Program-made: the position numbers and the translations under genes
Part shown: positions 21,443 to 63,987 of the stretch, piece after piece
How the letters are laid out: every line of letters begins with the position of its first letter
Numbering within the stretch: position 1 is the stretch's first letter
The notes under the pieces: generated by a model
The model's database searches: none
What the model saw: the letters and a program-made list of their open reading frames with translations, nothing else
What the model was told of the DNA's origin: nothing
Source of the DNA: Mizuhopecten yessoensis
Taxonomy: Eukaryota
NCBI RefSeq assembly: GCF_002113885.1
Contig: NW_018406654.1
Span: 298,957-362,956, forward strand
Direction: 5' to 3'
DNA: 64,000 nucleotides

Positions 21443-21744
21443 GCAGAATGTAACGTTATTTTCACCTATGACATATACACGGTATTCAACAGATATATTT
21501 ATATCTGATTAGTTACAACGTTAATAAGAAAAAGAAAGATCCGCCTCATAAAGCGTTGTTTCGCCTCCTCCTGACAATTCATTCTGTATCGTTATTGACA
21601 GCTTTTGAGTCTTGAATCAAATTCATTATCTTACTATTAATTTCCTTTACGAATCAAATCGTTTACGTACGCGTTTTTCCGTTCGTGTTTCCTGTAGACG
21701 TCAAAGTGTCGATGCAGACCCGGATTAGCAGGTTTTGCAAGTGT

Positions 21745-25772: not shown

Positions 25773-25920
25773 CCAATCGCTACAGGTATATTACAGGTAA
25801 CTCACAGGTATAGCTCAAGTAAATCTCAGGTAAGCGCTGGAAGGTATATGACGGAGACCTTTGGGACAGGTATATAAGGAGGACCGTCAGACTTGAATAG
25901 GGTTCGTCGGAGCCAGTTCT
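25773..25920 (+). promoter_or_regulatory. Core promoter of the micro-exon gene: CCAAT, 5x CAGGTA, TATA box
   Basis: ccaat 25773; caggta at 25783, 25794, 25805, 25827, 25867; tatataag 25871-25878; Inr-like ccagtt near 25913; ATG 25983. Confidence 0.7.
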
Positions 25921-25982: not shown

Positions 25983-26016
25983 ATGCTTTCGTTGGTAGTT
26001 ACAGTGGTCCTTCTCG
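25983..26016 (+). CDS. Exon 1 coding part, signal peptide MLSLVVTVVLL(G)
   Basis: aaaATG at 25983, hydrophobic run, donor g|gtaagt at 26017, phase 1; TATA box about 110 nt upstream. Confidence 0.88.
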
Positions 26017-29000
26017 GTAAGTATACTTTACGAATTTTAATTTTAATTTATAAAAAAACGAAACGATATAATATAAGACTTGAAATATATGCGAAAAAAT
26101 ATTTGAAAATATACTGATTTTTTTAATTGATATGTTTTAGTTACCTGTATATACATTTGAAATAATAAAAACAATAGCACAATGTGGAAAAGGATATACA
26201 ATTATGATCTTAATTTGTAATTGGTTTTTAACAATAGTTGGTGTTTTACCGGACTTTTAACAGATTTGCATAACTCATTAAATCATTGCAAAATATAGTG
26301 TTAGGTATCCTGTAGCTACTATCGTGATATATTAATGGATGTTTCCTATACAAATCATGTCTTTTACTCTTATCATTGGATAAGGTATATACATGTAATT
26401 GCAAGGGGAAATCAAACATAATACATATATAAAAAGGCCACTGAACTGAAAATCAGACTAACTCTGCGCTCTTTTTTGCGAGAGTCGAACAGATAAAACA
26501 AAATGTACTAACACGTTTTCATCTCTCAACATTAACCTGCAAACATATAAAAAAAAAAAGTTTGCAACGCTATTTGAAACAAAACTATAACCTGGCCATA
26601 TGTTTAACCAAACCCCAATTGAAGTAGCCCAAAATGGAATTATGGCATTATATAGTTTAAATTGTCTAGCATTATGAGGATTCCCTTTCCAACACAGGAT
26701 ATGCTTGTAAGTTATGAAATAATATGTTTAAATAAGAAAATGTCCATATCTTCATAAGCGAAAATGATTTCTAATATGCAAATATTTGCCAAATATAGGG
26801 TTTTAATAGCTAAAGGGAGATCAATTATAAATGTATATGCATATATATAAATGAGTATGAACGGGTCAAAAAAGCAATGCATCGTCTTGCTTCGCTAGCT
26901 TCGTACTTATACTTTTACATAGACATATTGCGAATGGACACACCCACATCTATAACGAGAAGGAATGACAAAAGTATCCCTTATCTTTCTGCATTAAAAT
27001 GTATAACCAAACAATTACCTCGAGATCGCTAAATCGTGTTAATAAAAAAAGTATCTCTAAAGCAAAAAAGTAAAGTCACGTTCACACACTCTTTAAGTTA
27101 ATAACCTTCTTATCTATTTGTTGGAATGTGTCTGTCTCTTCCATCTAGCCCTTGGTAATATTCATATGTTTCTCTAACACCTGAGACCACATTATTTACA
27201 ATTTGAAAACGAGTCACTAACAACTAATTTAGCATATTGTATAAAAGAGAAGGGAGTCTCTAAAACATTGGTCAAGTATACTTTAAAACAGGGAGCGCCT
27301 TAACTAAACATAGTTTACTTAGTTTAGTTTAGAATCTCAAATTTAATCCCGTACATTTTAAAAAGGATAATTATGTTTGTTAAACCTAATGCTGTAAACT
27401 ATAAAACAGGGGAAGGCATTATCAAAAGGTACGTCTAAAAGTTGGTTAATTTTTAAGACTTAATTGAGTTACAACGGAGAAGGGAGTCTATAAAGGCTAG
27501 TTAAGTAGATTGAGTTAAAACTGAGAAGGGAGTCTCTGAAAGCGAGTGAAGTAGATTGAGTTAAAACTGAGAAGGGAGTCTCGGAAAGCGAGTGAAGTAG
27601 ATTGAGTTAAAACCGAGAAGAGAGTCTCTAAAAGCGAGTGAAGTAAATTGAGTTACAACGGAGAAGCTGGTCTCTAAACTCTGCTCAGTGCATTATATAA
27701 CAGAAATGAGTTTTTTTTCAAATTAGCCCGATGTTTTTCCCAACACACAAATAACACAACATTATACCGAAGTGTTACTGAAATCATAGTACACGGAGAA
27801 AACAATCTCCCTTAAATCTAGATATGTATAAATTACAACAGAGAAGGTTTTTTTTAAATCTTGTCCAGCATATTTGAGAATGGAAAGGGTCGAAAAATGG
27901 TCAGTATATTGTAAGCTAGTTAGGTTAGTGTGTAACGTTTATTTTGTATACTTTATTATATAGATAGGAGTCACTAAGATCTAGTCAAGTATACTTTACA
28001 ACCGAAAAGGGAGTCAATGAAAAATAAACTAGTACATACATCGACCGAAACAAAAACGTGAATCCAAAAACTCGTCTAGTACATGTTACGACGTCGAAGA
28101 GAGTCTGCTTAATCGTGTTCGGTGTTACTTAGAAAGTTGAGGGAACCTCCATATTGTTTAAAAAAATGACAGATGCAGCCATAAGGAGTCATCTTTTCAT
28201 GTGTTTATAATCTGTATACAGTGATATGTTATACAAATCTGTTAGGTATATTAGGTGTTTAATAGAACTAGAAATGTTCGTAAGTTTACATTAATTGATT
28301 AATTCGTATTTAATAAAATGTCATATTGCATTTGTTGTAGGCCTGGCCGCAAGTGGTAAGTTTTATTGTCTTACAGAATTTTATATGTATTCTTAAAGTC
28401 AAGTTTTTCAAATTTCAATTTTTAAGTGTAAAACAAGTGATTTTGCAAGATTTATATAACAATTAAATCACTCGCATTTTTGTTTTATAAATAAGATGTT
28501 TGCTTTATAAAAGTTATTATTTTGATTTTGTCATAATTGATTTGTATTACTGTATTCAAATTCAATTAAATTTTAATTCAATGCGTTTTTATATGGTCAA
28601 CAACCTATAAAACAAAAAACGCTGTGTGGTGTACCTTTTATCGATTGGAAACTTCAAGGGAAGGAATATGCAGCATTTATATCTACATGTATACCTTTCT
28701 GAAAGTGTAATCCATTTTAAAAAGGAACACTTTTAGTATTGATACAGAGCAATATGTCATACCAAACAATGTTACACAATGATACCAACACCACACAGCC
28801 TTAAACAGGTCTAAGTTTTCTGCAGTATACACAACATAGCACTACTACTAAATTGATTCTTTTCTTCCATATTGGAAAATTGTTAAAACACATATTTTTG
28901 GAACCAGAACATGCTTTGGTAAGATCTGTCCACTCAGAAACACACTCTACAATGTACCTGCGTCTGAAAACTAGGATATGTCACACATACGAACATATAT

Positions 29001-29750
29001 ATAATAGTAAACTGCGAGATAACACTAAACTAAATATGTTGACCTCGTTGCAACACCTGCGATCTGTCCTATTCTTTTCCTTCTTCTCTGCCCATTCATT
29101 TCAGTTGTGTCTTCATATGCACATTATTTCCAATGATCTGAGCTGAAGAACTCGTAATTTACAAAATTACAAACAGTTTTTAAGGTTGCAATATTAAGGA
29201 CACATTGATATAGCCATAACGGCATGCGTATATTGGGTTCTTATTGGAATAAACCACATTTGTTTATTTCTAAAGATAACATATGGCGCATTTGTTTCTG
29301 TATGTGACTTTCTTAATCCGAGATTCCCCGACAGTTTCGAATAGCGTTAGTCCAGTTTTTAATACATGCTTGCAATATCCAAATCTGTTCAAAAAGTGGT
29401 TACTTTGATCGCACCTAAAGATGACGTCATGCTATTGTTTTGAATGAGACGTCATCATCCAAACATGTCATAATGAGAAGGAGTTCTTTCAAAAAGCTTA
29501 TGATATGAGCACCCATTCCCCTTTTAATGGAAGCAATTGATTGTGTTACTTGACACAAACAAATATTTTAAATAATCAAAGCAAAACTTTTGCATGTTTG
29601 GCCCATATTTTCGGAATTTTCAATGTTAATCATTAATATTTCTTCAGTCTTTAATAAGGTCAATACAGGCATTTAGTTCAAACAAAAATAGCCAGCACAA
29701 GTGTTCCAGTCGTTCTTCACGAAACAGAGTTATGTTTTTTCTTCAAGCTT

Positions 29751-29797
<47 letters not shown>

Positions 29798-32700: not shown

Positions 32701-35700
32701 TGTCTGACAACAGCTTATCAATCAGGGTCGCCTTTATGACATTTTACCGAATCGTTTTATTGCATAACTGTTCGTCCTCTTTTCAAATATATATTTTGAT
32801 ATAATGGCATCAGAAATAATATACCGGGACAATTTTGTCCATTGAATGTCTCGCCCTTTACCGTCTTAATCCATATTGAACTAACTTTGAAGTTGAAATG
32901 AAGACAATAGGGAAAATTAATTTTTGCAATCTATATATATATATATAATTTTAATTTAATATAAATTTATTGGAAGACTAAACATAATAAAGATAAAAAT
33001 ATAAGGCACTAGTTATTTTATTTTATGGTAGGGTATCATGTATACTACAGAGATTGTTTTAGTGTAAACACCCAATAACAAAATCAGAAATCCTATCACA
33101 AGATGATATCAAAAAGATAAGAAACAGCAAAACAACTGGAAAAACACATTATTTGATAAATAACGACACTTGAAACCACTGTAAGATGAAAGAGTTTGAG
33201 AAGATAATGTGCCGATAAAGACACAGCTGTCTGGCTTTACACTTACCCTGGGGCGCGTATCACCAACCATGTAACTCTGTTATTGATCAGGTGACAAGGT
33301 TGACACACCTGAATGCTAAAATTGATAGCATCATCTATATTATTTAGGATCACTAGTGGTGTGTATGACATTAGTGATTTCACGTGTGGGAGGGACCTGT
33401 CAATCAATCCCACCATTAACTTGATTTGACATTTTGTTTGTAGCGTCAGCATGTAATGCTTGTTGTTAGATACTTAACATTTTGTTACCTGTCGGTGCAT
33501 TGTGATGTGTCATTATATGTTTTACTGTTTCTGTAGTAAGCATAAGAACGAATATGATCGTTATCATTTAATAAATATATATAAGATCTACCACTAGGCC
33601 TTTCTGTTGTCTAGGCCTCAGACTCATAGGGAAAAATGGCATTGCCATTAAGCTATCGCGTACTTATCATTTCTGTCCAGCATACCTAATTCCTTACCAA
33701 ATTATACAAAGATATCTATGGTATGTCGTACTTTGTGTTGTAACCGATGTTACAAGTAATTCAATGCCCATTTAATGACAGGAGATATGCTTCAGCATGA
33801 CACGAATAGCAAACGATGTATATTTTACTAACGCATGATAGTTCAAACGAAATGTCCATTTGATGAAACTGTTAAAAACGACTTGTCAACTGCTTGGTTG
33901 TAATCGTCTGAGACATAACTTTTCGGATTTGATGAGTTTTCCNGGGGGGGGGGGGGGGGGGGGGGGGGGGATTGTTGCCATGTCCCAAATGCTTCTGCTC
34001 TAAGGTTTTTACATATGTCTTGAAGTGTTGACAATTTTTGTGTGTATTTCTATTTAAATTCGAGTCATTTGTTGATGGGCAGCAAATTTATTTGAACACA
34101 AGCACTAAAAAAAGACTACCGCTTAATATGTACATTTACAATGACCTCTATTCAGTTTATAATATGATACCAGTAGAAATTTGAGAGTCAAGAACACTCG
34201 TATTACGCAAACAGTTGTCTGTCCTATTCAAACAGGAATACAAGTCATCCAGCAACTATCGTAGCATTACAAGTAATAGTAACGATACAACAATCATATT
34301 ATTCAAAAACAAAGCACCACCATTGAAACATTGCTGCTAGTGGAGGCGATTATAAAATACAACAGCCCTTGGATACACGACACCTTGATTTACTAATTTA
34401 TAAACTCTAGACCCCTCACCACCGAAATCTAGAAGATATGGACACAATGGTAAGTTGATGATCCTCGGATCAAACAAGGCTTCAACACGTTGTTAATGAC
34501 AGACGCTTCTGTAACAGCTCACAAGCACCATGACTACACACAAATTTCACCTCTGTCTGGAAGAGCAACATTTTGAGCAGCGCTTAATTGGATATGTTAA
34601 TCCATTTCGGTTGAAGCAAGTTCCATTAGGCAAATATTTTATTTAATCTTTTTGTTTTATTGTTTTGTTTATAAGAAATGTGAGTAATTTTTTTTTTTTT
34701 TTTTTTTTTGCTTTTGGACTGAAATATAAATCAGAATAGCTTAAAAAAAACTCGATTTGATGTCCCTAATTATATTTGCCACCTTGCTAACCGCCAACAA
34801 ATTTCCTGAAAAAATCATCTCAATTTAGCACAAAACGTAATAACGCCGACATCTGCGGACAAAATGCGTAACTATAACTAGGTGTCTCTGGATTTCCTAT
34901 TCATGTTTCATATAGATCGGGAAGGCTATGGACATTGCTTCAACTGAGTCATTCACACAATGTTCAACACGGCTTTATGTAATTCCACATCTGCAAAATG
35001 AATTCATTACCATTTTGAATCATCCATTAACATTTTCATCAAATCGAATACCATGTCATTGCATTACACAACTGCAGCTTTCCACAGCGAGTTTTTATAT
35101 TCGTTAAGTGACCGTAGTATCAAATTAAAGTTCAGCAGGTCATCATAAATAATCATTGATTTGAAGGATTTATAAAATGTTTCGTTTAATAGTATGAGTT
35201 GTAACGTATAATGCTTACTCAGGCCCAACATTCCCCATTGGTAAGTACATTATATATATATATCATAGAAGACCTGTAGATGCTTATTTTTTTAATCTGT
35301 TACAGTGAACATTATGAACATCGTTAATTTATGCATTTTAGTTTAAATTAGTATAAGCGTTAGATATTGCTCTTACTTAAATGTATTATAGCATATCTTC
35401 AAGTTATTAGATGCAAAGTTATACACAATCTTTTCACAAACATGATCAGTAGTTGGATAGTTTCGTATTTTATCCTTGTGTATATTGGAAAATCGGCATG
35501 TCGTATGCATGTTCTATGTAAATTGCTACTAGGAATTTCCCTTATATAATCTGAAGTATTATTATATGGCTTATAGTCATTAGATGCGAAATTATTTCAA
35601 CTATATTAGTGCGGGATTAAAGCTATATTTGTACATTATAGAATGATATGACAGATTTAAATTCGCATACGTCCTTAGTGTTCCTGTATGTCTGCTTTAC

Positions 35701-50700: not shown

Positions 50701-51428
50701 CATTTGTTTTGAGATGGTCACACATCTAACTACAGATTCACTAAAATAAAATAAAAAAAGTTGTGAGAAACGTTTTATAAATCTCATGTAAAAAGGATTC
50801 CGAGGTTATGTCGTTTATCTTATTTTTGTTTGTACATGTAATTACTTTGCAAGTTAGCGCTTCGATAATTCAATAATTCTAAGTTTTTTTAACGTTCAAA
50901 ATATACATTACTGATATTTTAACAGTGTACACATTTTTCTAATATCATTTTTTTTCTTTCTTTCAGTCGTCCACACTGGTAAAAGCAGTTATTCCTTTTA
51001 ATCTTACACATCTATAATAAAAATAAAAATAAAATAAAGATATTATTCGATGCAACTCTACTTCCATTTTGACTTGGTGCGCATGCTTGTTTAATTCTAA
51101 ACGTGGAAAATGATAAATCCAAACATCTATTTTTGTCGAAATATCTGAATAAGGACTTATGTTTGTTGTCTATATAGCTGTAAAAGCAATAAAATATGAT
51201 TTTGTTTTAGTGTTTTATCTAACTACATATTATTTTTAATTTTGTTTTATTTCAGTCGCTAAGCCAATTACCAGTAAGTATTGTTTACGTCGTTTTAATT
51301 TCTTACACATTTGAGATGTATAATATATATATATAAGCCCTAGAAGGCAGAAAGGCCTAGCGGACGATCTGAAAAATTTGTTTTTATTCTATATTTTCCT
51401 TCGCAAGGACTTATTTATTTATCTATTA

Positions 51429-51472
<44 letters not shown>

Positions 51473-54400
51473 GATTCTTATTAACAAATTTCTATTTCAA
51501 GTTGACCAATTCAAGCTATGTTAAAATGGTTTATTTATTACTGAGAGCCATATTTAAACTATTTACGATAGACGTATAATAAATCATTGGTGTGTGCAAT
51601 ATATATAACATACTTAATCTAATTACGTTTTTGGTTTATTTTTTATTTTACAGAGATCAAAACAGGTAAGAATATATTTTAAAATTTATCATTGTCCCAA
51701 ACAGTCTTTTGTTCGCTCAATCCTGCAACATATTTGAAAAGTAATTGTTAAAGTAACTCGGATTGTAATGTTTTATAGTATAAATAGTGTCGTCACTGTT
51801 CAAATAAAAGCACGTTTATATACTTCTATTCTGGAATATCTATAATACTATAATACATTTTTTTCCTTATATTATTATGTTTTCACTTTAAAAACTGTTC
51901 TGTTTGACTTTTTTTCAGAATATAAAACCATTCACAGTAAGTATTTTTGAATCAGTCTTCAATATGGTAAACTTTAAAATCAAATAGAGGTAAATAAGCG
52001 ACTATTTACTCATACGGTCTGTCATCGTTAAATGAACTATTCGATTCGATATGTGTGTTCTGTATGCACTATACCACCCGAAAGTTTTATCTTCAACGTT
52101 ATTTCCTGATAACTAAGTACAATATGCACGTTAGAAAAACGACATTATAAAAACTGAGGAATTTGATATATGTCTATGATTGTTTATGTTTTCCATTTCT
52201 TAATTAGAGTACATGTATGTACATTATTTTTAACGAGGATTGATTTTGTGATTTTCTTTCTTCAAGAAACCGTCCCTATCCCATCACCCATGCCTAAACA
52301 CTGTGAGTATATAATCACATATCTATTATTATGCTAGATCAGTTTTACATATTTCGCCAGGTGTATCAATGACGCCATTAAGTGACAAAGAAAATCTGTA
52401 CCTTTAAATGTGTATGTTAAATTGCTAACATTCATGTAGTCCTAATTTCACAAACACGTGTTTGATTTCATTGGCGATACAATCAGGTTGTAACGTACGC
52501 AACGTGATTACCTATGTTTTATATGAATACTTAATTATAACTGTATCACTATTAATCATAATACAAAGCTTTTTGAACAAAACTAATACGATCACGCAAA
52601 AGTAACTTAACCAATGGTATTGAGCAGAAATTAACTAGAACGTTTACTGTTGATAAATATAGACTTTATCTATTTTACAACAATTATAAAACAAGTAAGT
52701 TCAACTTGAATATTAATCACTGTTAAGTTTATAAACATGTGTGTTAGAGGCGATTTACAAAATCCTTCTTTTATCATTGAATATGTTTAATCATTTCAGT
52801 TCACCACGTGAAACACGGTAAGTATGGAGAAGAGGATGGTAATGTGAACGATTAATTCATCAGAATATCATTATACTATAATGTAGTTTTTGACCACATT
52901 AATTCAAATAATCAGTAACAATGCTAGTATTTAGTTGATGTTAATAGATTATCTAAATTATACAGCTCGCACAAGCAGATGAATGAAAAGCAAAAACAAT
53001 TGGTTATATGCTATTTTTGTACTTTTTATACAGAAAAATAGTATCATTTGAACAATTATATTGCTTTTTTTTATATGAAGAAGATTATCGTAATATTTAC
53101 ATTGATATGGAATATAGAGATAGAGAGTAGTGCGGCTAAGGAATTTGGGAATTCAATCTACTGCAAAAGAGTGAAAAAATAACGACCACAAAAGCAACAT
53201 GCTATATAGGCATACATATTGAGACATTTATCCCGTTTTCACATACTTAATTTACCCCAAAATACAGTTTTGTCATTTTAAATGTACGTTTCCGGTGTTT
53301 TTTTTAAATATCACTGTTATCATTTTCAAAACTAGTGGTGTTTTATTAGAAATTATCGTCTCTTAGACAAAGAAAACTATAGAAATGCCGCAACACACCT
53401 CAAGCAATGACATTGTAATACAATAGTGATAATGATATAAATACATTGATTTTTAGAAAATGCATCCAGTCATTTAATTTACGAAAATTCAGTCGCAGCG
53501 CCGACGTGAACCTTTTCATGCATTGTTCAATGCATGCTTGCCAATATACCGTTGATGCTTTGCTGTCAAAACGAATTCAGTTCATAACTTTTACTTTACA
53601 GTTTCTAGTCTCTATGATTATTTTGATATGGGATGCAATTTCATATCAAATATATAATCAAAGTGTACTGTATAACCCGAATTGTTCCTTTGGCACTTTC
53701 CTTTGTTATTTGAAGCTATGCAAATGTTTCGTGGTGCAAACTTTCCTGGATATCCTATATTAACAAACAGTAGCCACGCGTATCATTCAGATTTGTTGTA
53801 TTTATTTTCGTGGTTCAATAGCAACCACGAAAACCACGAATGTTTATACACAACGAACCTTACTGACATCTATTGGAGATGATACACGGTTTTATCAACC
53901 CTAGAAAGTTAAAGGTTATGAACCAATCTTTTAATATATATATATATCGCATATGTAATCTGTTTAGAAGTATTTGGATTTGTTTTCAAATTTTAATATT
54001 TGTGCCTTTTTCCCTTAACAGTCGACAGACCTATTCATCATACAAGAACAGGTAAGACAATTCGTTTTAACAAAAGAGACAAATTATATCTTTGCATTCA
54101 ATACAGGTCTTCGTTTCAATACATTTCTCATAAACACTATGAAACGTAACAAGCATCCTGTGAACAAATGTAGTTTACTTTAAATCGTTAAAGCAGGCAT
54201 GATTTGTTTTAAATTGCGTCGAATAACATACACCTTTATCATAATACTATAAATAGGTGTTTAATCGTAATATGTATTTGATTTACTGACAGTGATGCTA
54301 ACTGACTCAAATTTCCCTCATTTCAGTGATCAAGAAAGTGGATGGTAAGTATTTTAGAAACTTTCATGGTGCACACATTACTACTGAAAGCGTTTGCTTT

Positions 54401-57400
54401 TAATTAAATGATATCCAATAAAAAAAACAATTCGAAATATTTCTATTAATAACTATATTTTATCTATATATAGATATCGGTTCTTCTGGAAACAAACCTT
54501 GAAATTAAATAGCACTTATTTCGAACCTTTAAAAATATAACTAGTTTCATTGTTGATTTGAGAATTTATACTTAATATCTGATTTTTAATTCATGGAATA
54601 ATTAAAAAGAAAGTTAAAAACAAATTGACTTTACTCCAAACCTTCAATAAACGTATGCAGTAAAACAAGTTAATATGTTTTGTATTGACATGTTATTTGT
54701 TGAAAAACATTTAAATAAGTATATACTTTTATTCTATATGAAATAATGATGTACTTCATATATATCACAAATCATAATCATACTTTAGAGATTTGTCTTT
54801 TCACAGGTACACAGCCGAATACAATTATGTTTAAGGCTTTTAGTTTAAACGATGATTTGACAATAGAAAAAAAAAATCAAGACGTTAAGACGAAATATTA
54901 TGCGATCTATGTTTAACCTAATATATATATATGATGCAAATATTTATTAATGTTATCCTTGCTTCATTTCAGTACCCAAGATCGGTAAGTAAAACCTTGT
55001 TTAGTGATGTAAAAATCTATTTGAGACTATATACATAACAAAATTGAATTGCTTAAATTATATAGCAGGAAAACCGGTGCATGAAAAAACATGATACTAA
55101 CCGAAAAATGGCATAAGGCGACGTGATATGAAGTGAAATGTATGCATCAACCTAAGCATACATTCCGTTTGTATGACAATTGTGTCGACGAATTTAATTA
55201 TAAAATGATTTGTTTATGTATGTCAATATAAAATATTGAAATTTAAAATAGATAACGTTATAACAAGAATAGTTTCCTTAAATTGTTTCTTTTAATCTAA
55301 CTAATAACTATTTGCTGTAACTGTATTAACGCTGTGTGATATGTTGTCTGTACAAAGAAAATATCAAGTCATTTACACCATGATTACATGTTGAATTATA
55401 ATACTTCCTTTTAACATAAAATCTCATTTCTGTTTTGCAGTTGAGAAGACACGTAAGTTTTGCCAGTGTAAAATCAAAGATGCAATAAACTTCATTAAAT
55501 GTCACATTTATATGAAAAGGTGCAATTGTTAAAGCATGGAATATTTTTGGACGATTACATTTCATAGAGATAAATATCTCAATATTTTTTTCTTGTCAAA
55601 GCTTGTTTATTTTATTCATTATGCTTTAGATATTTATTTACATATTCAAACGACAAAAAAAAATGTATTCTGATACTGCTAAATGCAATATGTATTTATC
55701 ATAAGTTTGATCAATGTTTCTTTTTCTTAACAGGCTACCATGCAGTTGGAGGTGAGAAATGCATAAAAGTTAAATTATCTTACTGTATCATATACAAAGA
55801 GTATATCATCCATTAATTCAATTATACCAGAGGGTTGATTAGGTCTATACATTTAATGCATTTTAATATTAATGAACCGATTCAGAAATTAACGAGATAT
55901 GTCAGCGTATCGCATTATGTGTTATATCTGGGTAAGGAGAGGTCTACGGGCTCATAGACCCCGTCTGGTCTTTATCGACCCCGGGCCAAAGACGATGGGT
56001 CTATACATACCAAAGGGGTCTTTAAACCTGAAGACCACGCCAAACCCAGAAATAACGAATCTGTCACCCTGATAATCTATGATCACTTTTTTCTGCTAAG
56101 GCACTTTATGAGTTTAAGTTGTACTCGATTGCTACCAGAATAGCCCATCTTTGAAATTAACACCCTACGGCCCCCTAATCTCCTGTTTTGTTGAAATTTC
56201 TGTCGTTTTATATTGCTTGTAGGCTATTACATCATGCGAATGATTGGCAAACTTCGAACGCTTGAGTGTTTCACGGACGCTATCTTTGTTGTTATGCAGA
56301 AATGTTTTAGTTTGAGTTATCTCCACTGGCACATGCTATTATAGACCCCGACAGAACAGGGTCTATAGCAATATAGATCCCGGCAAAATATCCAATCAGA
56401 AAGGGTGTTACAAATGAGAAGGGTGACAAAGTATATTGTGTCCATTGCATTTGTCAAAGATAACTAGTGAAAAGGAAGCTTGATCCTGTTAACCTGGCTA
56501 ACTGATGGGGCTTAGGGGCTCACCAAAAATGGTTTACATGATTACCAGAAGAATGAAAGGGCCAACTTATTTGGTCTTAAGTAATAAGTCAACCAATAAT
56601 ATAAGTTAATTGAGTGCATAGGTGTTCAACATAAAAAAATAACCAATATATATTGGAAATGTGTGTACAATTGCCTGTAAAACATAATTGCATATTTACA
56701 ATAAGGAATACAGCTTTGAACACACACTTCGTTACGTTTAGTTTATTAAAGAAATTAATATAAGCGCAGTGTAGAGTTACCGGTTGCGTCTGTGTGTGTT
56801 TGTGTGTTTGTGTGTTTGTTTATTTGTTTACGGATCCTATTGATCAGGCCGTTGTAGAGTGACGGTTCACTTAAGTAGGTCACAGTGTCCTTTACTACAT
56901 CTACTACGATTTTGCAGCAAAATAAATACAGCGTTTCTGAAAACCCTATGAACCAAGTAATTATAAAAGAGTGTAAATGGGGATAGTACGCAGTTTTTTC
57001 ATGTCTTTAATGGCGATTGGAACATAAAAAATTAAACTCTCGACATATCGGTCTCGAGTTCAAACCAGATATCATGTTATAATCGTCAACACTAGTCATT
57101 TAAACGACGTAATGTGTTTATCATAAACTGCTTAACATTGTTTTTATTATCTTTCAGTACCTGTAGTCAAGACTAATACCGTGGTAAAAACTAGTAAGTA
57201 AAATATTACTTGTGTCATAATATTTTGTTTTTTAATAATAATATTTTTTGTGTCATAATATTTTTTTATCAATGTTTAATCTTCATTTAAATTAATTTGT
57301 TCTTTCCGTTTCATCAAATTAATTTTGTTATCGACTAAATTTACACACTGTCACCGTAGAAACGGATATATAATAACACTTTCATAGCGTTAATACTGTA

Positions 57401-60400
57401 TGCCTGTTTATTATGTGAACATATTATAAGACAGTGACATTTTTTTTATTCTTAACTTAATAGATGTCGTGGATCGGCCGAGTAAGTAAACTTGATTTTA
57501 TCCAATGTACTTATTAACGCTCAGTTTCAATACTTAACGACATTCTGGTTGAAAATTCGATATATTGATAATCGAGAGCTGTGCATGACATCAGTTTGTG
57601 GCAACAACGTTGGTATAACTTTCGTCATTAAGAAATATAACTAAAAAAAAACAACTAATCGAAAATATGTTGTCGGTAATGTTAAAAATGTGCCTTTGTT
57701 TATGTATAAATCCTGTTATATTGCGGGGTCCGTCGCTTATTATAATTTATAATATGCAGATATGTTTTGAATGATAGTTGTTATTGGAGTAGGTAGATAT
57801 ATATTCTCCAAAGGATCATTATTATTTTTTAGGAAGTTGATAATTCAAAATAATCATATGCAAACAAAAGTCTGTTTTTATAAAAATATAATGATAGTTT
57901 AGGGGAAATAGGAGATACGAGTTCGAGCTTTGACAATTGGCTAAATTAAGACCTGTCAGTATACCTGTATGTATTTGTTTTAATATCATGCTGTTTTTCT
58001 AATCCACAGTCCCAAAAATCTGTAAGTACTAAATCAACATCAGCCTTTTTAATACAAATACCATAATATGTGATATCCTTAATATTATATATTTATATAT
58101 ATATATGGGTCTATGAGAACGTTCATGTTGTATTGGGTGCTCTTAAGATTTCTGTCGTCGATATTGACTTAAAATTAGTTTTTATACATGTAAACCGGGT
58201 AATTTTTTGTTAATTTTTTTTTAATGTTTTTAATATCTTTCTTTATACTATACATACTATGCGTTTGCCATAATTAAGTTCATACATTGTATCTTAATAC
58301 AAGTTTTATTATTTTGCTTCTTCATTTTCTACATGATTCGTACAAAAGTACTGTTATTCTTGTTAAGTAAATTCTTACTTCCTTTTGTTCAATTTCCATA
58401 TATAGCACATTTTAAAACATGTTCAAATTATATATTTCTATTATAATTGCATGTTTTATATGAATTAATATTGGTTTTTGAATGAAACACTAATTAGTTT
58501 AAAGGTAAAGTGTATCAAATTAAATCGGGAGAAGAACTCCACGCAGAAATTTGAGTGGGAGTTTTCTTCAGTCTATATAGTATTAGTAAAGGATGTGCAT
58601 CTGGCTAAGAGTAACTTCCCATATCAAGTTCCTCTTAAACTGTGTGACCTTTGAATGAGATCTTCATTTTGACGCCTTTCCTTAATAATTCATGGATCGT
58701 AAAATGTTTGAAGTGAAACATTTGCAATGTATGAGTCTTGAGTTGGACGCCTTCAGTGTTTGTGTGTTTTTAAATAAGTTACAATCATTAATTGTTTTAT
58801 CAATCATCACTCTGTAAAATGGTTCCCAGCATGTGATTTGTATGGAATACTTTCTGTGTAAAAGAGCTGTAACATATATTTTACAATAGTGGCAAAGGTA
58901 TCCTTAACACTCACTTTGCCTGCATTTAATTTTCAACCATCGCATAAGCTTACATGATTAGCTGTTTAAATATGCATTTTTGTTACGTTTTAGTTAAGAA
59001 TGATCACCATACTCAAGCGTATATTGAGATAACCAACGACTGTAACACTATGACATTATAACTTTCACATACGTTTATTATAATGTAAATATGATATAAC
59101 TTAGACACATTGAGTAGACAGCGTTATAATGATAAGGTAAAATGGGCATGGCATACCAATTGAATAGCATAACTACAATGAGAATGTATCTTTCGTAGAA
59201 TATACTATCATATTGAACTTTGATGAAACCTAACAAAAACTGTATTGTTTTTGCACAAATATTTTAACTGGTTTCATTTATTCATTTCAGTCAATCGAAT
59301 TCACACTGGTAAGTAATTATGTCGATATTTTTATTATTGTACATCTTTTAATTTTGTCTTTTTATCTAAAAGTGATACCTTCCTGTTGAGTAAATATCGA
59401 GATACATTGGTTATATCTATATCACAGGAATAAAATTGACTTACATGCAGTATAACTTGCACACAAAATATATATTTTTTTATTTAAATATATGATTGTA
59501 AATGATTTATAATCCTCCTTAATGAAACATGACATACAATATAAAAAAGGAAGAGACACGTGAGCATTATGTCAATTTAGGCTGTTTGTATTTATGCAAT
59601 TACTTTACTTGTTTATGGAAATCTGTCCCGTGTTTACAGACATTACAATTTAAATCTTAGAAATTCTTTCAAAATAATTCACTATTTATCAGGTTGAAGT
59701 TTTAAGGTTCTATACCCTCTGTATGTTATCATTGGTAATATTTGTTCTTGATCTGTAAATGCATTTGAGTTATTTCTCATTCAGATATCTGTTTTTAATT
59801 GTTGAAATTGATTTATATGTAACTGTCATTCATATTAATAATTAAGTATAATCAATGTTCTCGTTTTCTTTGAAATCTCCATGAGGTTTTTAATTCCGTT
59901 GCGTGTGTTAAAACTTTTTACTCACGACTTATGGTAGGTCCACGTAGTGATTACAAAATAAAACTATTATCCGTTTGAGTGGGTACTCGTAATCCACGAA
60001 AGTATATACCCGCGAATATACCTTTTAGGGAAACCACGAAAGTTGGTTCTCACAAAAATATCTGACGTCACCGAATGTACAATGCTGTTTGTTTATTAGC
60101 GAAATAAGAGAACCCGAATATATTATAAATACGCGATGTAGTATTCTCGTGAGATGTGCAATGATTGCACGTGTTCCAATTGAACCTATTAATTGGGATT
60201 GGTAAGAAACTTTAAAGTGAGCAGTCTCTTAACAATGATATAAAAATACAGTTGCTTAAAACTGGGATAAACCTCACGACCCAACTCACGTGGATTTGTA
60301 AATTGACTTTGATTCTTTTATTCAATTGTAAGCCTCTTACTGTTATGCATTTGTTAACTTTTATATCTAATTGTATTTTTTTTTTAAATTTCAGTTAGAG

Positions 60401-63400
60401 AAAAAATTCCAGGTAAGCATACTTTTTTTTCGCTTTTAGTCGTATTAAATGAATCATTTCATACTTATCCATTCGCCCTATATTAATGGATATATCTTTA
60501 ACATTCCATTCGTTTTCATTAGTCCATATACTCACTTTTAATGTGACATGATGATGTAAATGTTCAAAAAGGACTGAATTATTTGGATAAGATCAAGGTC
60601 AAGGTAACTGTTATTCAATATAGTTCAAGATGTTACGATTCTTGTCTCCTAATTCAAGAGATACTTACGTTTTTGAAGTATGAAATTGAGTTAAACGGTG
60701 GCAAAAGAGTTGTTTTTCTAAGGTCAAAGTCAAGGTTACTGTTACTAAAATTGGGCCATTTGGGTACAGTCAGACTTAATATGGAGTCGCAGAGACCTGA
60801 TAGTAACATTTTCATTCCCTAAATACATTATCAGACTTAGCTCTCATGAGAATCTGGAAAAAAAAGATAAAAGTAAAAGAAAGCATGACATAATTTGCAT
60901 AGTTTATACATACTATATAGTGCATTGTATATCCAATTGATATTGAACAAACGGTGACATTTAAGTCAAATAGAATACCAAATTTACCAAATACCCAAGT
61001 GATAAAAAAAAATATCACTTCGTCGTCTTGAAATTCAAAATTGGCAGATAGAAAAAGCAGAAACGTTCTAAAAAGCAACGGTAAATACATCGTACTTTCT
61101 ATTAAATAAACCATTTTTTTTTTTCATTAATTGTGTTTATTTATGTATGTATTTATGTATTTATTTATTTTTCAGTTCCATACAAGCAAACCGTGGTTCA
61201 ACAACGACCATGTAAGTTGATAAGCTCTATTGATGTGTGTGTATGCAAAATTGCTTTAAAACAAACCGGACATGGAAAAATATCAAGTTACAACCTACTT
61301 GTATCGAAATAACAATTTCTATTATATAGGCAACATATTTCTGAGATAATATATCAGTAAGAAGTATATTTTTATTTTATTTTGGAAAGTGAATGAAAAC
61401 GCTTAATTTGGTTGAAATGGTTAATTGATAAGGTTATACACTAATTTAATATCAATAATGTCATGATTCAGTTTACCTCATCTTAACAGTGTTATAATTC
61501 GATATTATTTATTATTTTACAGTTCCAGGTAAAGATGCACTCCTTCCTTGCACAGAATCACGTCAATATTTTGCCTCATGGTATATGTATCATATCAATG
61601 TGGAAAGTAATAAGGATCACTAATAAATAGTACACGAACAAAATAATGTTATTCAGATTATATAATAGTTTTCATATATGCAGCATGTTATTGAATTTTA
61701 TAGCAGCATTTTCCAAGTCCTTACCTTAGCTGCCGTGTTGTTTCTGTTATAATTAAAGATGAGTTTTACTTGCTGGTGGTATTTTATAAGTATAACACAA
61801 AATCAATCACATTTTCATTTAAAATACTATTTCAGAAATTATCCCATAGATATTTGTATATGTTAATGTTGAATTTTCTAAATGTAGTTTCATATGTAAT
61901 CCTTTGAAACGTTTTCCCCATATAATATCTTTGTATGTCGATGCATTGTATACTATTGTTTTTAATTATTTTTCTGATTTGTGTATTTATTTATGTTTCA
62001 GTTGTGCAAACAAGTAAGTATTTTCTAAATAACACAGGGCATAGTTACTATTGAAAGATCATGTGATACAAAGAGTACACAACGACAAATAGTTCTGCAT
62101 ATTTGAATAGGGAAAATGAAAAATATTGCTAAAGTACAATAGTGTAATATGCAATATTTTATATTCATTGGAAGATATCATTAACACCAAGTTACTGTTA
62201 AATACATAGATGCTACACAACGAGTACCGGGTTGATATCGTATTTATCTCACTCGAGTTAGATAATTTTCGAAAGTCACAAAAGATACGAGCTTTACTAT
62301 TATCATTTATTAATGTCATTATTGTATTACTACTTAAGCGGTGCATTCACTTTATGATCTTATTAAATGAAAAAACAATAAGAGCCACTGAACTTCATTT
62401 GAGTGTATGTGTATGGCATGGTATACCAGCCCCACATTTATACCAACACCGTCCAGCCATTACTTCATTGAACATAAACTCATTTACATAATATTAAGTA
62501 TAGTAGTTAAACCTCAGTACAGTGTCACTTGTTCTCTCGTGTATTGCCATCATATTACAGGTGCTCTTTTTCTTGAGGATCCATTCCTTTGTTTTCTTCT
62601 TAATGATTGTCAAACCCTTTTATAATGCCAAATTAAATATGGTGACGGTATAACGAGGTTTTCGTGGATCAGTTTTCTGTTTTATATTTATAACCGTTTG
62701 TATTTCTTATTTTTTTACAGAGGTGGTAGAAAGTAAGTATAGATCAATGCCGACAGTACTATATTAAAAATAGCGTTGCATGAAATATAACAAACAAATT
62801 AAGTAACTTATCAAGTAGATGTTATGTTTTTATCGGATAATTTTGCAACGAAAATTGTAAACACGAAAATCAGATGAATCGTTTGTTCCTCACCTAACAT
62901 ATCAAATATTCATTTAAGATACTCATTAGACATTGATGAGAAACATTGGTTACCTAACAGGCCTATATTTGCCTTTTTGAAATGATTAAATACACTATAT
63001 TATATAACACAATCATTTATCTGTGTAAAATATTTTGGTTTTATGATAATCATTAGATATTAATGAGAAACATTGGTTACCTAACAGGCCTATATTTGTC
63101 TTTTTGAAATGAATAAATACACTATATTATATTACACAATCATTTATCTGTGTAAATCTAAAAAGCATGTTTGAAATATGCAAAAAATTATGTATCCAAA
63201 TCAGGATTTACAAATCATAAGTCTAAGCATGTACGTGAGGAATTGGAAATCCTTTATATGAAAATATTTGTTTTGCACAAGTTGTACAATGGTATCTCAT
63301 AATCATATTTTCACATTTCTACTTTTCAGAACATATTAACCATGTACAGAAGGGTGAGTGTTAAGCCCATTAAAGTTTATTTATTATTTGTAACAAAGAT

Positions 63401-63987
63401 GTTGGGATCAATAAATAAAGTTATAGATGATGTTTGAATTTATAAATATAAAACTTTCTTTAAAAAAGAAAAGTTAAAAATAGTCGTTTGGTGTTTAAAA
63501 TCTGCCATCAATTACAACATAAATATTAACATAACAAAATTGATTGTCTTTTGATAATAATTCCGTCTTTGCGTATTGCAGAGTTATCTTCTCTTGGGAA
63601 CAGGTATTGATTGTTACGTCATTGGTTTGTGCGAGAAAATTACGTCGTTTTCTCAAAAATTGATGACGTTACTCTCGCAAACAAGTTACGTATCAATCAA
63701 TACCTGCTCCCAAGAGAAGATAACTCTGCAATAAGCAAAGACGGAATATCTCTAGGAGCGACACGATGTTAACATTTATAAAAATGACGTCATCTTAAAA
63801 AAAATGTGTTTACGGAAAGCTATGGTTTTTAAGCTTTAAATACATTTTCACTTGTAAAAAGAAATACGACAACGTTTTTTTTTTAAATTTTTGGATGCGC
63901 AATATGTTATTGATATGCTGAACCATAATTGACTCATTGTTTAATTTCTTTTTTCAGTTCCAGTAGTCCGTAATCATGTTCAAACAG
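25983..63987 (+). CDS. Micro-exon gene (at least 49 exons, 3' end beyond window) encoding a secreted Val/Lys/Pro/His-rich, articulin/alveolin-like repeat protein
   Basis: All internal exons are AG/GT-bounded, phase 1-1 and multiples of 3 nt. Spliced product (exons separated by spaces): MLSLVVTVVLL GLAAS DPSPPKSRRYGHN GPTFPI DPFPGPQ HPYRGQR HPIIP ARGHSNTKVI TVPKVHREQVGILHQEA VPVHQTQVVTNE RVKIVTQKQPVLVPQT RVQKILQQVPVQTV KKVAAPMIFKHK EIVPFIKERTNH VVHK IKVPKYITNTVVRK VPEPVAIPKI QTKH VHHVRTKVVHKHVPSP YRVD NYVK VPKH IIRN SPSP VPVK VADPKYIDRV HVKTQIVPKH IVHT VAKPIT KIKT EYKTIH KTVPIPSPMPKH FHHVKH VDRPIHHTRT VIKKVD VPKI VEKT RYHAVG VPVVKTNTVVKT NVVDRP IPKI FNRIHT VREKIP VPYKQTVVQQRP FP VVQT KVVE KHINHVQK VPVVRNHVQT. 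No stop in 1144 nt. The family label is by composition only. Confidence 0.92.
27475..27680. repeat. 46-bp tandem repeat (gagaagggagtctc...gattgagttaaaact), about 4.5 copies, with degenerate flanking copies
   Basis: Units start at 27521 and 27567; related motifs at ~27248 and ~28005. Confidence 0.9.
28341..28355 (+). CDS. Exon 2, 15 nt, GLAAS (end of signal peptide)
   Basis: tttgttgtag|gcctggccgcaagtg|gtaagt. Confidence 0.88.
31801..32010. repeat. Local tandem duplication of ~107 bp
   Basis: tattacatttaacc.agttttgctgctgta...gtgtaggataatgc occurs twice. Confidence 0.9.
33943..33970. other. Assembly ambiguity (N) next to a poly-G run
   Basis: ccn followed by 27 G; sequence, possibly including exons, could be missing here. 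Confidence 0.9.
34411..34449 (+). CDS. Exon 3, 39 nt, DPSPPKSRRYGHN
   Basis: branch-like tactaat, aaactctag|...cacaatg|gtaagt; weak pyrimidine tract. Confidence 0.7.
35223..35240 (+). CDS. Exon 4, 18 nt, GPTFPI
   Basis: cttactcag|gcccaacattccccattg|gtaagt. Confidence 0.75.
36212..36401. mobile_element. Palindromic MITE (~190 bp), TA-flanked
   Basis: Long TIRs ttccgtctttgcgtattgcagagttatcttctc / gagaagataactctgcaatacgcaaa.acggaa; four copies in the window. Confidence 0.88.
36889..36909 (+). CDS. Exon 5, 21 nt, DPFPGPQ (cassette copy 1)
   Basis: atcctcag|atccctttcctggaccccaac|gtgagt; weak acceptor. Confidence 0.65.
37726..37746 (+). CDS. Exon 6, 21 nt, HPYRGQR (cassette copy 2)
   Basis: atccccag|atccttatcgtggacaacgac|gtgagt; paralogous to exon 5. 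Confidence 0.65.
38505..38525 (+). pseudogene. Pseudo-exon, 21 nt, HTYPGIR (cassette copy 3; acceptor CAG changed to CAT)
   Basis: atgatcat|atacatatcctggaatccgac|gtgagt aligns to exons 5 and 6 but lacks the AG. Confidence 0.65.
39024..39038 (+). CDS. Exon 7, 15 nt, HPIIP
   Basis: ttttttgcag|acccgatcattccag|gtaaat. Confidence 0.85.
39223..39252 (+). CDS. Exon 8, 30 nt, ARGHSNTKVI
   Basis: gttttcag|caagg...gttataa|gtaagt. Confidence 0.87.
   Translation, partial: QGDIRIPRL
39925..39975 (+). CDS. Exon 9, 51 nt, TVPKVHREQVGILHQEA
   Basis: tatttttaag|ctgtac...gaagcgg|gtaagt. Confidence 0.87.
40058..40312 (-). mobile_element. Second copy of the L2/CR1-tail retroposon, in the intron between exons 9 and 10
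   Basis: Aligns along its length to 3424-3680; flanked by possible TSD cagtat (40052 and 40313). Confidence 0.75.
40706..40741 (+). CDS. Exon 10, 36 nt, VPVHQTQVVTNE
   Basis: tactaac branch; ttcttttgtag|tccct...gaac|gtaagt. Confidence 0.92.
41128..41175 (+). CDS. Exon 11, 48 nt, RVKIVTQKQPVLVPQT
   Basis: ttttttcag|gggtg...aacca|gtaagt. Confidence 0.92.
41308..41349 (+). CDS. Exon 12, 42 nt, RVQKILQQVPVQTV
   Basis: tcttttacag|gggtt...ctgtta|gtaagt. Confidence 0.92.
41523..41558 (+). CDS. Exon 13, 36 nt, KKVAAPMIFKHK
   Basis: ttaattacag|aaaaag...cataaag|gtaaac. Confidence 0.88.
41656..41848. mobile_element. Palindromic MITE, same family as 36212
   Basis: Same TIRs and interior. Confidence 0.88.
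42828..42863 (+). CDS. Exon 14, 36 nt, EIVPFIKERTNH
   Basis: tttcattcag|aaatt...atcacg|gtgagt. Confidence 0.92.
43182..43193 (+). CDS. Exon 15, 12 nt, VVHK
   Basis: gtattgcag|ttgttcataaaa|gtaagt. Confidence 0.88.
43823..43864 (+). CDS. Exon 16, 42 nt, IKVPKYITNTVVRK
   Basis: ttgttcccag|ttaaa...cgtaaag|gtaagt. Confidence 0.93.
44526..44555 (+). CDS. Exon 17, 30 nt, VPEPVAIPKI
   Basis: atatttcag|ttccc...aaatcc|gtacgt. Confidence 0.9.
44900..44911 (+). CDS. Exon 18, 12 nt, QTKH
   Basis: ttattccag|aaaccaagcacg|gtgagt. Confidence 0.9.
45790..45837 (+). CDS. Exon 19, 48 nt, VHHVRTKVVHKHVPSP
   Basis: ctcatttcag|tccat...tctccat|gtaagt. Confidence 0.93.
46624..46635 (+). CDS. Exon 20, 12 nt, YRVD
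   Basis: ttgttcacag|atcgtgtcgaca|gtgagt. Confidence 0.88.
47025..47036 (+). CDS. Exon 21, 12 nt, NYVK
   Basis: ttgttacag|attatgtcaaag|gtaagt. Confidence 0.9.
47447..47458 (+). CDS. Exon 22, 12 nt, VPKH
   Basis: cttctacag|taccaaagcaca|gtaagt. Confidence 0.9.
48280..48291 (+). CDS. Exon 23, 12 nt, IIRN
   Basis: ccctttgtag|ttattagaaatt|gtaagt. Confidence 0.87.
48670..48681 (+). CDS. Exon 24, 12 nt, SPSP
   Basis: ttatgaacag|ctccttccccgg|gtaagt. Confidence 0.9.
49128..49139 (+). CDS. Exon 25, 12 nt, VPVK
   Basis: cctccaacag|ttccagtgaagg|gtgagt. Confidence 0.9.
49562..49591 (+). CDS. Exon 26, 30 nt, VADPKYIDRV
   Basis: atctttacag|ttgcc...gtgtgc|gtaagt. Confidence 0.92.
49694..50243. mobile_element. 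Non-autonomous hairpin element of the same architecture, in the intron between exons 26 and 27
   Basis: Palindrome 49694-49839 centred on (cccgaggg)3; tttattacatactt 49841-49854 pairs with aagtatgtaataaa 50230-50243. Confidence 0.78.
50600..50629 (+). CDS. Exon 27, 30 nt, HVKTQIVPKH
   Basis: attttgcag|atgta...aacaca|gtaggt. Confidence 0.9.
50967..50978 (+). CDS. Exon 28, 12 nt, IVHT
   Basis: ttctttcag|tcgtccacactg|gtaaaa. Confidence 0.87.
51256..51273 (+). CDS. Exon 29, 18 nt, VAKPIT
   Basis: ttatttcag|tcgctaagccaattacca|gtaagt. Confidence 0.9.
51654..51665 (+). CDS. Exon 30, 12 nt, KIKT
   Basis: attttacag|agatcaaaacag|gtaaga. Confidence 0.88.
51919..51936 (+). CDS. Exon 31, 18 nt, EYKTIH
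   Basis: tttttttcag|aatataaaaccattcaca|gtaagt. Confidence 0.9.
52267..52302 (+). CDS. Exon 32, 36 nt, KTVPIPSPMPKH
   Basis: ttcttcaag|aaacc...aacact|gtgagt. Confidence 0.9.
52800..52817 (+). CDS. Exon 33, 18 nt, (F/I)HHVKH
   Basis: atcatttcag|ttcaccacgtgaaacacg|gtaagt. Confidence 0.9.
54022..54051 (+). CDS. Exon 34, 30 nt, VDRPIHHTRT
   Basis: cccttaacag|tcgac...gaacag|gtaaga. Confidence 0.92.
54327..54344 (+). CDS. Exon 35, 18 nt, VIKKVD
   Basis: ctcatttcag|tgatcaagaaagtggatg|gtaagt. Confidence 0.9.
54973..54984 (+). CDS. Exon 36, 12 nt, VPKI
   Basis: ttcatttcag|tacccaagatcg|gtaagt. Confidence 0.9.
55441..55452 (+). CDS. Exon 37, 12 nt, VEKT
   Basis: tgttttgcag|ttgagaagacac|gtaagt. Confidence 0.9.
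55734..55751 (+). CDS. Exon 38, 18 nt, RYHAVG
   Basis: ttcttaacag|gctaccatgcagttggag|gtgaga. Confidence 0.88.
55921..56428. mobile_element. Diverged hairpin element of the same architecture, in the intron between exons 38 and 39
   Basis: Imperfect palindrome 55921-56056; tgtcaccct 56062-56070 pairs with agggtgaca 56420-56428. Confidence 0.65.
57158..57193 (+). CDS. Exon 39, 36 nt, VPVVKTNTVVKT
   Basis: tatctttcag|tacct...aaacta|gtaagt. Confidence 0.92.
57464..57481 (+). CDS. Exon 40, 18 nt, NVVDRP
   Basis: acttaatag|atgtcgtggatcggccga|gtaagt. Confidence 0.9.
58010..58021 (+). CDS. Exon 41, 12 nt, IPKI
   Basis: aatccacag|tcccaaaaatct|gtaagt. Confidence 0.9.
59291..59308 (+). CDS. Exon 42, 18 nt, FNRIHT
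   Basis: ttcatttcag|tcaatcgaattcacactg|gtaagt. Confidence 0.9.
60395..60412 (+). CDS. Exon 43, 18 nt, VREKIP
   Basis: aaatttcag|ttagagaaaaaattccag|gtaagc. Confidence 0.9.
61176..61211 (+). CDS. Exon 44, 36 nt, VPYKQTVVQQRP
   Basis: atttttcag|ttcca...gaccat|gtaagt. Confidence 0.92.
61523..61528 (+). CDS. Exon 45, 6 nt, FP
   Basis: attttacag|ttccag|gtaaag; gives RP-FP-VV in register. Confidence 0.78.
62002..62013 (+). CDS. Exon 46, 12 nt, VVQT
   Basis: atgtttcag|ttgtgcaaacaa|gtaagt. Confidence 0.9.
62721..62732 (+). CDS. Exon 47, 12 nt, KVVE
   Basis: ttttttacag|aggtggtagaaa|gtaagt. Confidence 0.9.
62925..63156. repeat. Local tandem duplication of ~127 bp
   Basis: gagaaacattggttacctaacaggcctatatttg...tctgtgtaaa at 62938 and 63065. 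Confidence 0.92.
63330..63353 (+). CDS. Exon 48, 24 nt, KHINHVQK
   Basis: acttttcag|aacat...cagaagg|gtgagt. Confidence 0.9.
63559..63748. mobile_element. Palindromic MITE, same family, opposite orientation
   Basis: Same TIRs; interior is the reverse complement of the 36212 and 41656 copies. Confidence 0.88.
63958..63987 (+). CDS. Exon 49, 30 nt, VPVVRNHVQT
   Basis: tttttttcag-type acceptor|ttcca...caaacag|gtaata; the gene continues past the window. Confidence 0.9.

Follow-up and report, generated by a model that had tools for sequence, protein, structure and literature searches.

The exon array and its transcripts

The window analysed here is a 64,000-nt stretch of Mizuhopecten yessoensis DNA (positions 298957-362956 of a 1.33-Mb contig, in an assembly of 987.6 Mb and 82,659 contigs), AT-rich and eukaryotic in character, with a GC content of about 0.28-0.39 and a single N at position 33943. 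Its plus strand carries a gene with a long run of micro-exons, and all exons given below lie on that strand. A preliminary description, made from the sequence alone, had proposed a hidden gene of this kind with at least 49 symmetric exons ending at 63987. Our independent model arrives at 50 exons within the window (1186 nt) with the same end and continues past it, to give a full model of 56 exons, all phase 1-1 and multiples of 3, with roughly 1.3 kb of coding sequence (CDS) over 42 kb. It comprises exon 1, a probable exon 2, five uncertain N-terminal candidates, 15 exons confirmed by RNA reads, 28 strongly predicted exons and six weaker ones, and it contains a core model of 45 exons. Exon sizes range from 12 to 51 nt, the commonest being 12 nt, the length of 16 among the 44 core exons that follow exon 1, and the introns of the array measure 132-1705 nt. 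Exons of 36 nt or less number 40 of 45 in the core model and 49 of 56 in total, and they hold 78% and 76% of the CDS, respectively.

Using three raw-read RNA runs from different studies (X11, X14 and X16) and one contig set from another study (X1), we placed transcripts on the 6-kb segment 39900-45899, which holds the largest exons and includes 11 internal exons. The X11 reads join 15 consecutive predicted exons, from 39223 to 47458, exactly at the predicted GT..AG borders, with several hundred reads per junction. Depth in this run, with both mate directions summed, is about 100-185 on the predicted exons and zero in the introns outside repeats. The same exon path appears in X1 as one spliced contig with a depth of 154-205, accompanied by thin intronic contigs. 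The predicted junctions are thus present in both data sets, and the hidden gene first proposed from the sequence is borne out. In X14 and X16 the exon depth is 0, which means that expression of the gene is restricted.

The confirmed series starts with a 30-nt exon (39223-39252), of which exactly these 30 letters precede 39925 in 418 X11 reads, and continues with the largest exon of the gene (39925-39975, 51 nt), read in X11 and in the X1 contig. The joint 39975>40706 that follows is supported by 499 X11 reads together with the X1 contig. X11 reads then cover the exons at 40706-40741 (36 nt), 41128-41175 (48 nt), 41308-41349 (42 nt), 41523-41558 (36 nt, with the weak donor GTAAAC) and 42828-42863 (36 nt), which are linked by the joints 40741>41128 (720 reads), 41175>41308 (526 reads, two alleles), 41349>41523 (434 reads) and 41558>42828 (385 reads). 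Further on, they cover 43823-43864 (42 nt) and 44526-44555 (30 nt), joined by 482 reads (43864>44526), and the 48-nt exon at 45790-45837 (VHHVRTKVVHKHVPSP). The two 12-nt exons within this span, 43182-43193 (VVHK) and 44900-44911 (QTKH), were left unplaced by the aligner and are seen as letters between the flanking joints, that is, between 42863 and 43823 and between 44555 and 45790, in agreement with the earlier expectation that short-read aligners would struggle with this gene. Loose read ends add the 30-nt exon upstream and three 12-nt exons downstream: 46624-46635 and 47025-47036, both read in the loose end behind 45837 (568 reads), and 47447-47458 (VPKH), of which the first 6 nt are in the reads and whose splice sites score 16.9 and 12.5. 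Five of the 15 confirmed exons are therefore 12 nt long.

Three exonic polymorphisms are visible in the X11 reads, with codon positions assigned by a hand count from read positions. The substitutions 39962 C/T and 45827 T/C are synonymous and fall on third codon positions, and 41308 G/A (Arg/Lys) affects the first base of its exon, adjoining the acceptor.

The frame of the confirmed exons is open: the 459 read-confirmed nt contain no stop when read in the predicted frame, and 6 and 9 stops when read in the two alternative ones. In the whole model the predicted frame again has 0 stops and the others 15-26, in line with the stop-free, phase 1-1 open reading frame (ORF) claimed at the outset. Valine is encoded by 15 of the 44 codons that are split between exons.

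With every exon in phase 1-1 and of a length divisible by 3, any subset of them would remain in frame, and the preliminary description took the gene for a system in which combinatorial skipping of symmetric micro-exons yields many variants, in length and in sequence, of one secreted protein. The architecture matches that of the schistosome micro-exon genes (PMC10526429), and alternative splicing of this sort occurs in tropoelastin, whose splice sites are all phase 1:1 (10.1101/2024.12.03.626628). The reads nevertheless speak for constant inclusion. The 12-nt exon 43182-43193 is included in 404 of 409 junction reads and 44900-44911 in 455 of 456 (X11), more than 99% in each case, and across the exons 39925-45837 every well-supported joint links neighbour to neighbour. 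No well-supported skipping joint was found among the 11 internal exons in X11, where 26 minor joints rank below rows with at most about 15 reads, compared with about 400-700 for each real junction. A single path was also assembled in X1, the contig set of the second study. Although these counts come from one expressing run and 11 internal exons, with the 26 minor joints standing beyond those listed, we consider diversification by skipping quite unlikely. In the original proposal the exon sizes began at 6 nt; in the span covered by reads, the 6-nt candidate 45191-45196 (scores 9.7 and 6.3) is unused and is excluded by 455 of 456 junction reads.

Splice-site density and the ends of the gene

A stop-free phase 1-1 chain of AG..GT segments can always be built in AT-rich DNA, so that the ORF alone is no proof of a gene; with every exon in phase 1-1, it cannot separate true from false exons either. 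The relevant test is therefore the density of strong splice-site pairs. Between 39 and 64 kb, the plus strand has 46 short segments that combine a pyrimidine tract and a GTAAGT-like donor with a length divisible by 3, compared to 14 and 5 in the other two length classes, and the same count in control sequence (the minus strand and 0-39 kb) gives 3-9. Using a position weight matrix trained on short AG..GT segments of the plus strand at 39-64 kb, we obtained 48 phase-1-open candidates scoring at least 16 in 39.0-68.3 kb, about 16 per 10 kb, against 0 upstream, 5 downstream and 1 on the whole minus strand (0-2 per 10 kb). Nearly all strong acceptors at 39-68 kb precede a strong donor at a multiple-of-3 distance. 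An initial excess of multiple-of-3 segments at 0-25.9 kb, which might have indicated a second micro-exon gene upstream, resolved into unrelated weak candidates.

Another 28 exons with near-consensus splice sites extend the array from the read-confirmed ones to 4.2 kb past the window end. Among 43 exons the donor is GTAAGT in 31 and GTGAGT in six, and the acceptor is CAG in 38, preceded by a tract that is 73% pyrimidine, a tally that is partly circular because the 28 exons were chosen by score. The donors of the 15 read-confirmed exons are GTAAGT in ten cases and GTGAGT in three. We also looked for intronic enhancer k-mers around the micro-exons and found nothing clear.

The exons within the window that are predicted from splice scores fall into a few sizes. 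Those of 12 nt are at 48280-48291, 48670-48681, 49128-49139 (where an alternative acceptor at 49134 would leave 6 nt), 51654-51665, 54973-54984 (VPKI), 55441-55452, 58010-58021 (IPKI), 62002-62013 and 62721-62732, and those of 18 nt at 51256-51273, 51919-51936, 52800-52817, 54327-54344 (scores 7.9 and 12.6), 57464-57481, 59291-59308 and 60395-60412. The larger ones are 63330-63353 (24 nt), 49562-49591, 50600-50629 and 54022-54051 (30 nt each), and 52267-52302, 57158-57193 and 61176-61211 (36 nt each). Weaker candidates are found at 47975-47992 (18 nt, scores 5.2 and 8.4), 50967-50978 (12 nt, with an excellent acceptor of 16.5 and the donor GTAAAA), 55734-55751 (18 nt, scores 8.4 and 4.6) and 63958-63987 (30 nt, VPVVRNHVQT, with a strong acceptor and the donor GTAATA), the latter being the last exon of the original proposal. 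A weak 6-nt candidate at 61523-61528, taken from splice scores, is doubtful because the similar one at 45191 is unused. Past the window, in coordinates numbered from its end onward (L002), the model continues with exons at L002 334-345, 1251-1280, 1607-1630, 2578-2589, 3233-3250 and 4217-4240, the last lying 4.2 kb beyond the end.

Splice scores at 26.0-39.0 kb are at background level, and this part of the exon list did not hold up: the exons proposed there at 34411, 35199, 36889 and 37726 are no better than chance picks. Strong support exists for 40 of the 50 exons in the window: reads for 15, splice scores for 23, and content for exons 1 and 2. The candidates in question are 34411-34449 (DPSPPKSRRYGHN, acceptor score 1.5), 35199-35240 (VVTYNAYSGPTFPI), and two 21-nt segments, 36889-36909 and 37726-37746; together with a likely 15-nt exon at 39024-39038 (HPIIP, acceptor 8.0 and donor 9.7, outside read coverage) they make up the five uncertain N-terminal candidates at 34.4-39.0 kb, which score at chance level. 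The two 21-nt segments belong to a cassette of about 0.8 kb that is present three times at 36600-38900, at 67-83% identity; every copy contains an open phase-1 segment of 21 nt followed by a GTGAGT donor. Given acceptor scores of -8.3 and -2.0 in copies 1 and 2, their use as exons is doubtful; copy 3 (38505-38525) has CAT in place of CAG.

Exon 1 (coding part 25983-26016) starts with the ATG, encodes MLSLVVTVVLL and ends in phase 1 at a GTAAGT donor that scores 13.4. It lies outside read coverage. Between 15 and 39.2 kb, no other phase-1 exon that starts with an ATG combines a good donor with a hydrophobic peptide. A TATA-like box (TATATAAGG, 25872-25880, plus strand) is read directly about 100 nt upstream of the ATG and may act as its promoter. 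Five CAGGTA motifs at 25783-25873, upstream of this box and overlapping it, may represent clustered transcription-factor sites. The probable exon 2 (28341-28355, GLAAS) would complete a signal-peptide-like leader and was chosen by its content, its splice score of 12.0 being at background. The joins from exon 1 to exon 2 and from exon 2 to the array are likewise predicted, and the intron before the array would measure up to 10.9 kb, depending on the N-terminal candidates.

These joins leave room for another arrangement, in which the array would be a low-complexity spacer within a gene that is larger or starts elsewhere. Either exon 1 at 25983 would not be its start or domain-coding exons would lie outside, so that a small secreted protein would not be the necessary product. 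That the first two joins are predicted, that 26-39 kb holds only chance-level splice candidates and that the confirmed ORF has no early ATG and runs open to its 5' end all fit such an arrangement. It is made improbable by the surroundings: the only other ATG-started phase-1 exon with a good donor in 15-39 kb has 3 codons, exon 1 has its TATA-like box and a well-scoring donor, neither 0-25.9 kb nor 68.3-94 kb contains long ORFs or dense strong exons, and no domain-coding exons or long ORFs were found within 26 kb downstream of the array.

The stop codon had been expected beyond the window, and the array does continue there, as far as L002:4240, where three candidate 3' ends present themselves. 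A weak acceptor at L002:4342 would add seven more residues and a stop, with AATAAA at L002:4397; reading through the donor at L002:4240 would lead to a stop at L002:4375-4377; and a strong acceptor at L002:4496 lies wholly within a 1.2-kb interspersed repeat. The terminal exon that the last of these would open (L002:4496-4650, acceptor 11.7, a 50-residue tail, AATAAA 208 nt further on) was not accepted, because exon and acceptor are inside the repeat L002:4461-5647 identified by local blastn. Its tail peptide matched more than 150 genomic loci, and among protein representatives it found three weak low-complexity matches only. The repeat itself is 1.2 kb long and has more than 150 genomic copies, with 72-93% protein-level identity over the 50-residue query; it brings a strong site resembling an acceptor, together with a 50-codon open frame, right behind the last array exon, and could be either an exonised terminal exon or a decoy.

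The locus is single-copy: when exons with their flanking DNA, and also 5.3 kb of the array, were compared with the genome, the only matches were the locus itself and an intronic repeat at about 46272-46470, and no paralogue or haplotig of the gene was found at a second locus. Within 39-64 kb, no intron similarity between exon cassettes was detected, which implies that the duplications that built the array are old. A tandem-duplication origin of the main array was rejected on these grounds, and the cassette at 36.6-38.9 kb is the only one seen in triplicate.

The predicted protein and its interpretation

Local computation on the joined model gives a predicted protein of about 350-435 residues, a range that spans the core and full models, with a hydrophobic leader and a pI of about 10.6. 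The leader (MLSLVVTVVLLGLAAS), formed by MLSLVVTVVLL from exon 1 and GLAAS from the probable exon 2, is recognised from its hydrophobic composition. Valine makes up 19% of the chain, followed by Lys (12-14%), Pro (10-11%), Ile (8-9%), Thr (8%), His (8%) and Gln (6%), with about 2% Gly and 3% Ala. The 74 Lys and Arg residues face 23 Asp and Glu residues, and the protein has no Cys, Trp or N-glycosylation sequon. Short modules recur along it (VPKH, VPKI, IPKI, VPVK, VVHK, VHKH, HHV.K and V.K), as do longer ones (VPVVKTNTVVKT/VPVVRNHVQT and HVKTQIVPKH/HVEKVAVPKI), and the motifs VPK (z = 4.6) and PK[HI] (z = 6.0) are enriched over shuffled sequences. The chain appears proline-interrupted and prone to beta-strands, and its low Pro+Gly content points to beta-rich rather than elastomeric behaviour, according to a rule on the Pro+Gly content of elastomeric proteins that Rauscher et al. 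reportedly put forward in 2006.

The idea that no functional coding gene exists, the exons being a chance AG..GT chain or parts of a spliced non-coding or decaying transcript, can draw on the ease with which phase 1-1 chains arise in AT-rich DNA and on the chance-level N-terminal candidates, but it is effectively refuted by the exact junction reads and by a frame test in which one frame of three is open over the confirmed exons and over 1.05-1.3 kb of model, with an excess over controls that is at least tenfold and peptide modules that recur.

Schistosome micro-exon genes (MEGs) consist of 10-20 exons, 6-81 bp in length and for the most part divisible by 3, with introns of 0.1-5 kb between them; their first exon encodes a leader, their small secreted products are of low complexity and gene finders miss them (PMC10526429). 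The scallop gene resembles them in having a leader-type first exon ahead of a series of very short symmetric exons, and the 76-78% of its CDS that lies in symmetric exons of at most 36 nt places it on the MEG side in this respect. The threshold for MEGs is said to have been set by DeMarco et al. in 2010 at 75% of the CDS in micro-exons. The scallop gene differs from MEGs in its 45-56 exons and 350-435 residues, compared with the 10-20 exons and small proteins of MEGs, in a modal exon of 12 nt rather than 15 nt, and in phylum and composition, and the skipping typical of MEG transcripts left no sign here (X11 and X1, over 6 kb). The likeness, and with it the part of the MEG-like proposal that stands, is one of architecture.

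In the tropoelastin gene (ELN) every splice site is phase 1:1, and the transcript is alternatively spliced (10.1101/2024.12.03.626628). All introns are phase 1:1 here too, and both genes would provide an N-terminal signal peptide or signal-peptide-like leader and a modular protein rich in Val, Pro and Lys, with one short module per small exon. The exons of elastin, at 27-186 nt, are larger. Elastin alternates Gly/Val/Pro hydrophobic domains with Lys-Ala or Lys-Pro cross-linking domains, an alternation that the predicted protein lacks; it has 2.1% Gly and 2.8% Ala, no poly-Ala-Lys, and is rich in Ile, Thr, His and Gln. Its Pro+Gly content would also lie far below that of elastomeric proteins if the rule just mentioned is applied. 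Finally, elastin is heavily alternatively spliced, unlike this gene in the sample seen. Two further systems are similar by description. The PEVK region of titin consists of Pro/Val/Lys-rich modules encoded by many small in-frame exons, but it is intracellular and Glu-rich, and mussel foot protein 4 (mfp-4) is a secreted bivalve byssal protein with His/Val/Lys-rich decapeptide-like motifs, reminiscent of the motifs predicted here. To our knowledge, mfp-4 is not known as a micro-exon gene. Literature searches found no mollusc or scallop micro-exon gene of such kind.

Taken together, the locus is probably best described as a single-copy, tissue- or stage-restricted micro-exon gene on the plus strand, constitutively spliced, whose product is a secreted basic protein. 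The first exon (ATG 25983) would encode a hydrophobic leader that directs secretion; after long introns, an array of phase 1-1 micro-exons (12-51 nt each) would follow, 43 at the minimum and perhaps as many as 54 or so, which begins at about 39.0 kb and ends 4.2 kb beyond the window. Their splice sites are near-consensus, the donors being GTAAGT or GTGAGT and the acceptor CAG being preceded by a long U-rich tract, and they are joined constitutively and in order into one dominant mRNA. The data presented here show that the gene exists, how it is spliced and read, and that its expression is restricted, whereas secretion and an extracellular role are inferred. The product would be a Cys-free, strongly basic chain of short recurring modules rich in Val, Lys, Pro, Ile, Thr and His. 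Once secreted, the mature polycationic chain may be an extracellular structural or matrix component, its histidines and lysines being available for metal coordination, for cross-linking, or for binding polyanions or acidic partners. The symmetric layout would go back to exon duplications of long ago in a modular repeat protein; it leaves room for cassette splicing but is not put to that use in the sample examined. Several points weigh against this description: splicing was seen in one expressing raw-read run (X11), over 6 kb; the joins of exons 1 and 2 to the array fall outside the read-covered span, and exon 2 scores at background; the 3' end has three candidates, the best-scoring acceptor being inside an interspersed repeat; and the designation as a secreted structural protein is suggested by composition.

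A bolder extension, to which we attach only a low probability, is that convergent evolution has given a bivalve a giant micro-exon gene, with roughly three times as many exons as any schistosome MEG, with some 17 exons of 12 nt in series spliced at more than 99% fidelity, and with a new kind of polycationic His/Val/Lys/Pro material protein as its product; the symmetric exons might still serve as length-tuning cassettes in other tissues, stages or individuals. With or without such cassettes, the locus would then lend itself to studying how the spliceosome defines long runs of 12-nt exons outside the nervous system. The gene offers a system for constitutive 12-nt exon definition, apparently through near-perfect U1-complementary donors and long U-tracts, and its roughly 50 consecutive phase-1 micro-exons outside flatworms show that the layout known from MEGs and elastin has also arisen elsewhere, in further phyla and in proteins of a different type. 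That symmetric micro-exons mean diversification is a tempting conclusion, which the gene also corrects. Gene finders and short-read aligners are known to miss runs of micro-exons, and this locus is a stringent test case for annotation pipelines; if the product is a component of byssus, shell, ligament or another matrix, its His/Lys/Val/Pro module design would be of biomaterials interest.

Repeats and neighbouring elements

The introns of the array contain several repeats. A palindromic element of about 190 nt, similar to a miniature inverted-repeat transposable element, with two inverted arms, occupies 41657-41849 and 63560-63749, and further copies are near L002:8275, L012:4074 and L003:1799. 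Its depth is in the hundreds in all four RNA data sets, with joints between opposite strands, and is independent of the expression of the host gene. Interspersed repeats at 40100-40300 and 43700-43800 are transcribed in all RNA runs, and the intronic repeat at 46272-46470 has at least 40 genomic copies.

Upstream of the gene, a minisatellite at 21637-22621 consists of 22 copies of a 39-nt unit. Its minus strand has a 323-codon open frame of 13-residue repeats rich in Ser, Pro, Thr and His, mucin-like in appearance, which could be coding or a chance open repeat. Two satellites with 20-nt units are located at 1-1041 (51 copies, with a strong GC skew) and at 16961-17259 (15 copies). Downstream, isolated pairs of strong splice sites at L003:2061-2093, L003:2554-2565 and L002:9283-9323 enclose phase-1 peptides rich in Gly, Ala and Ser, and may belong to another small-exon gene.

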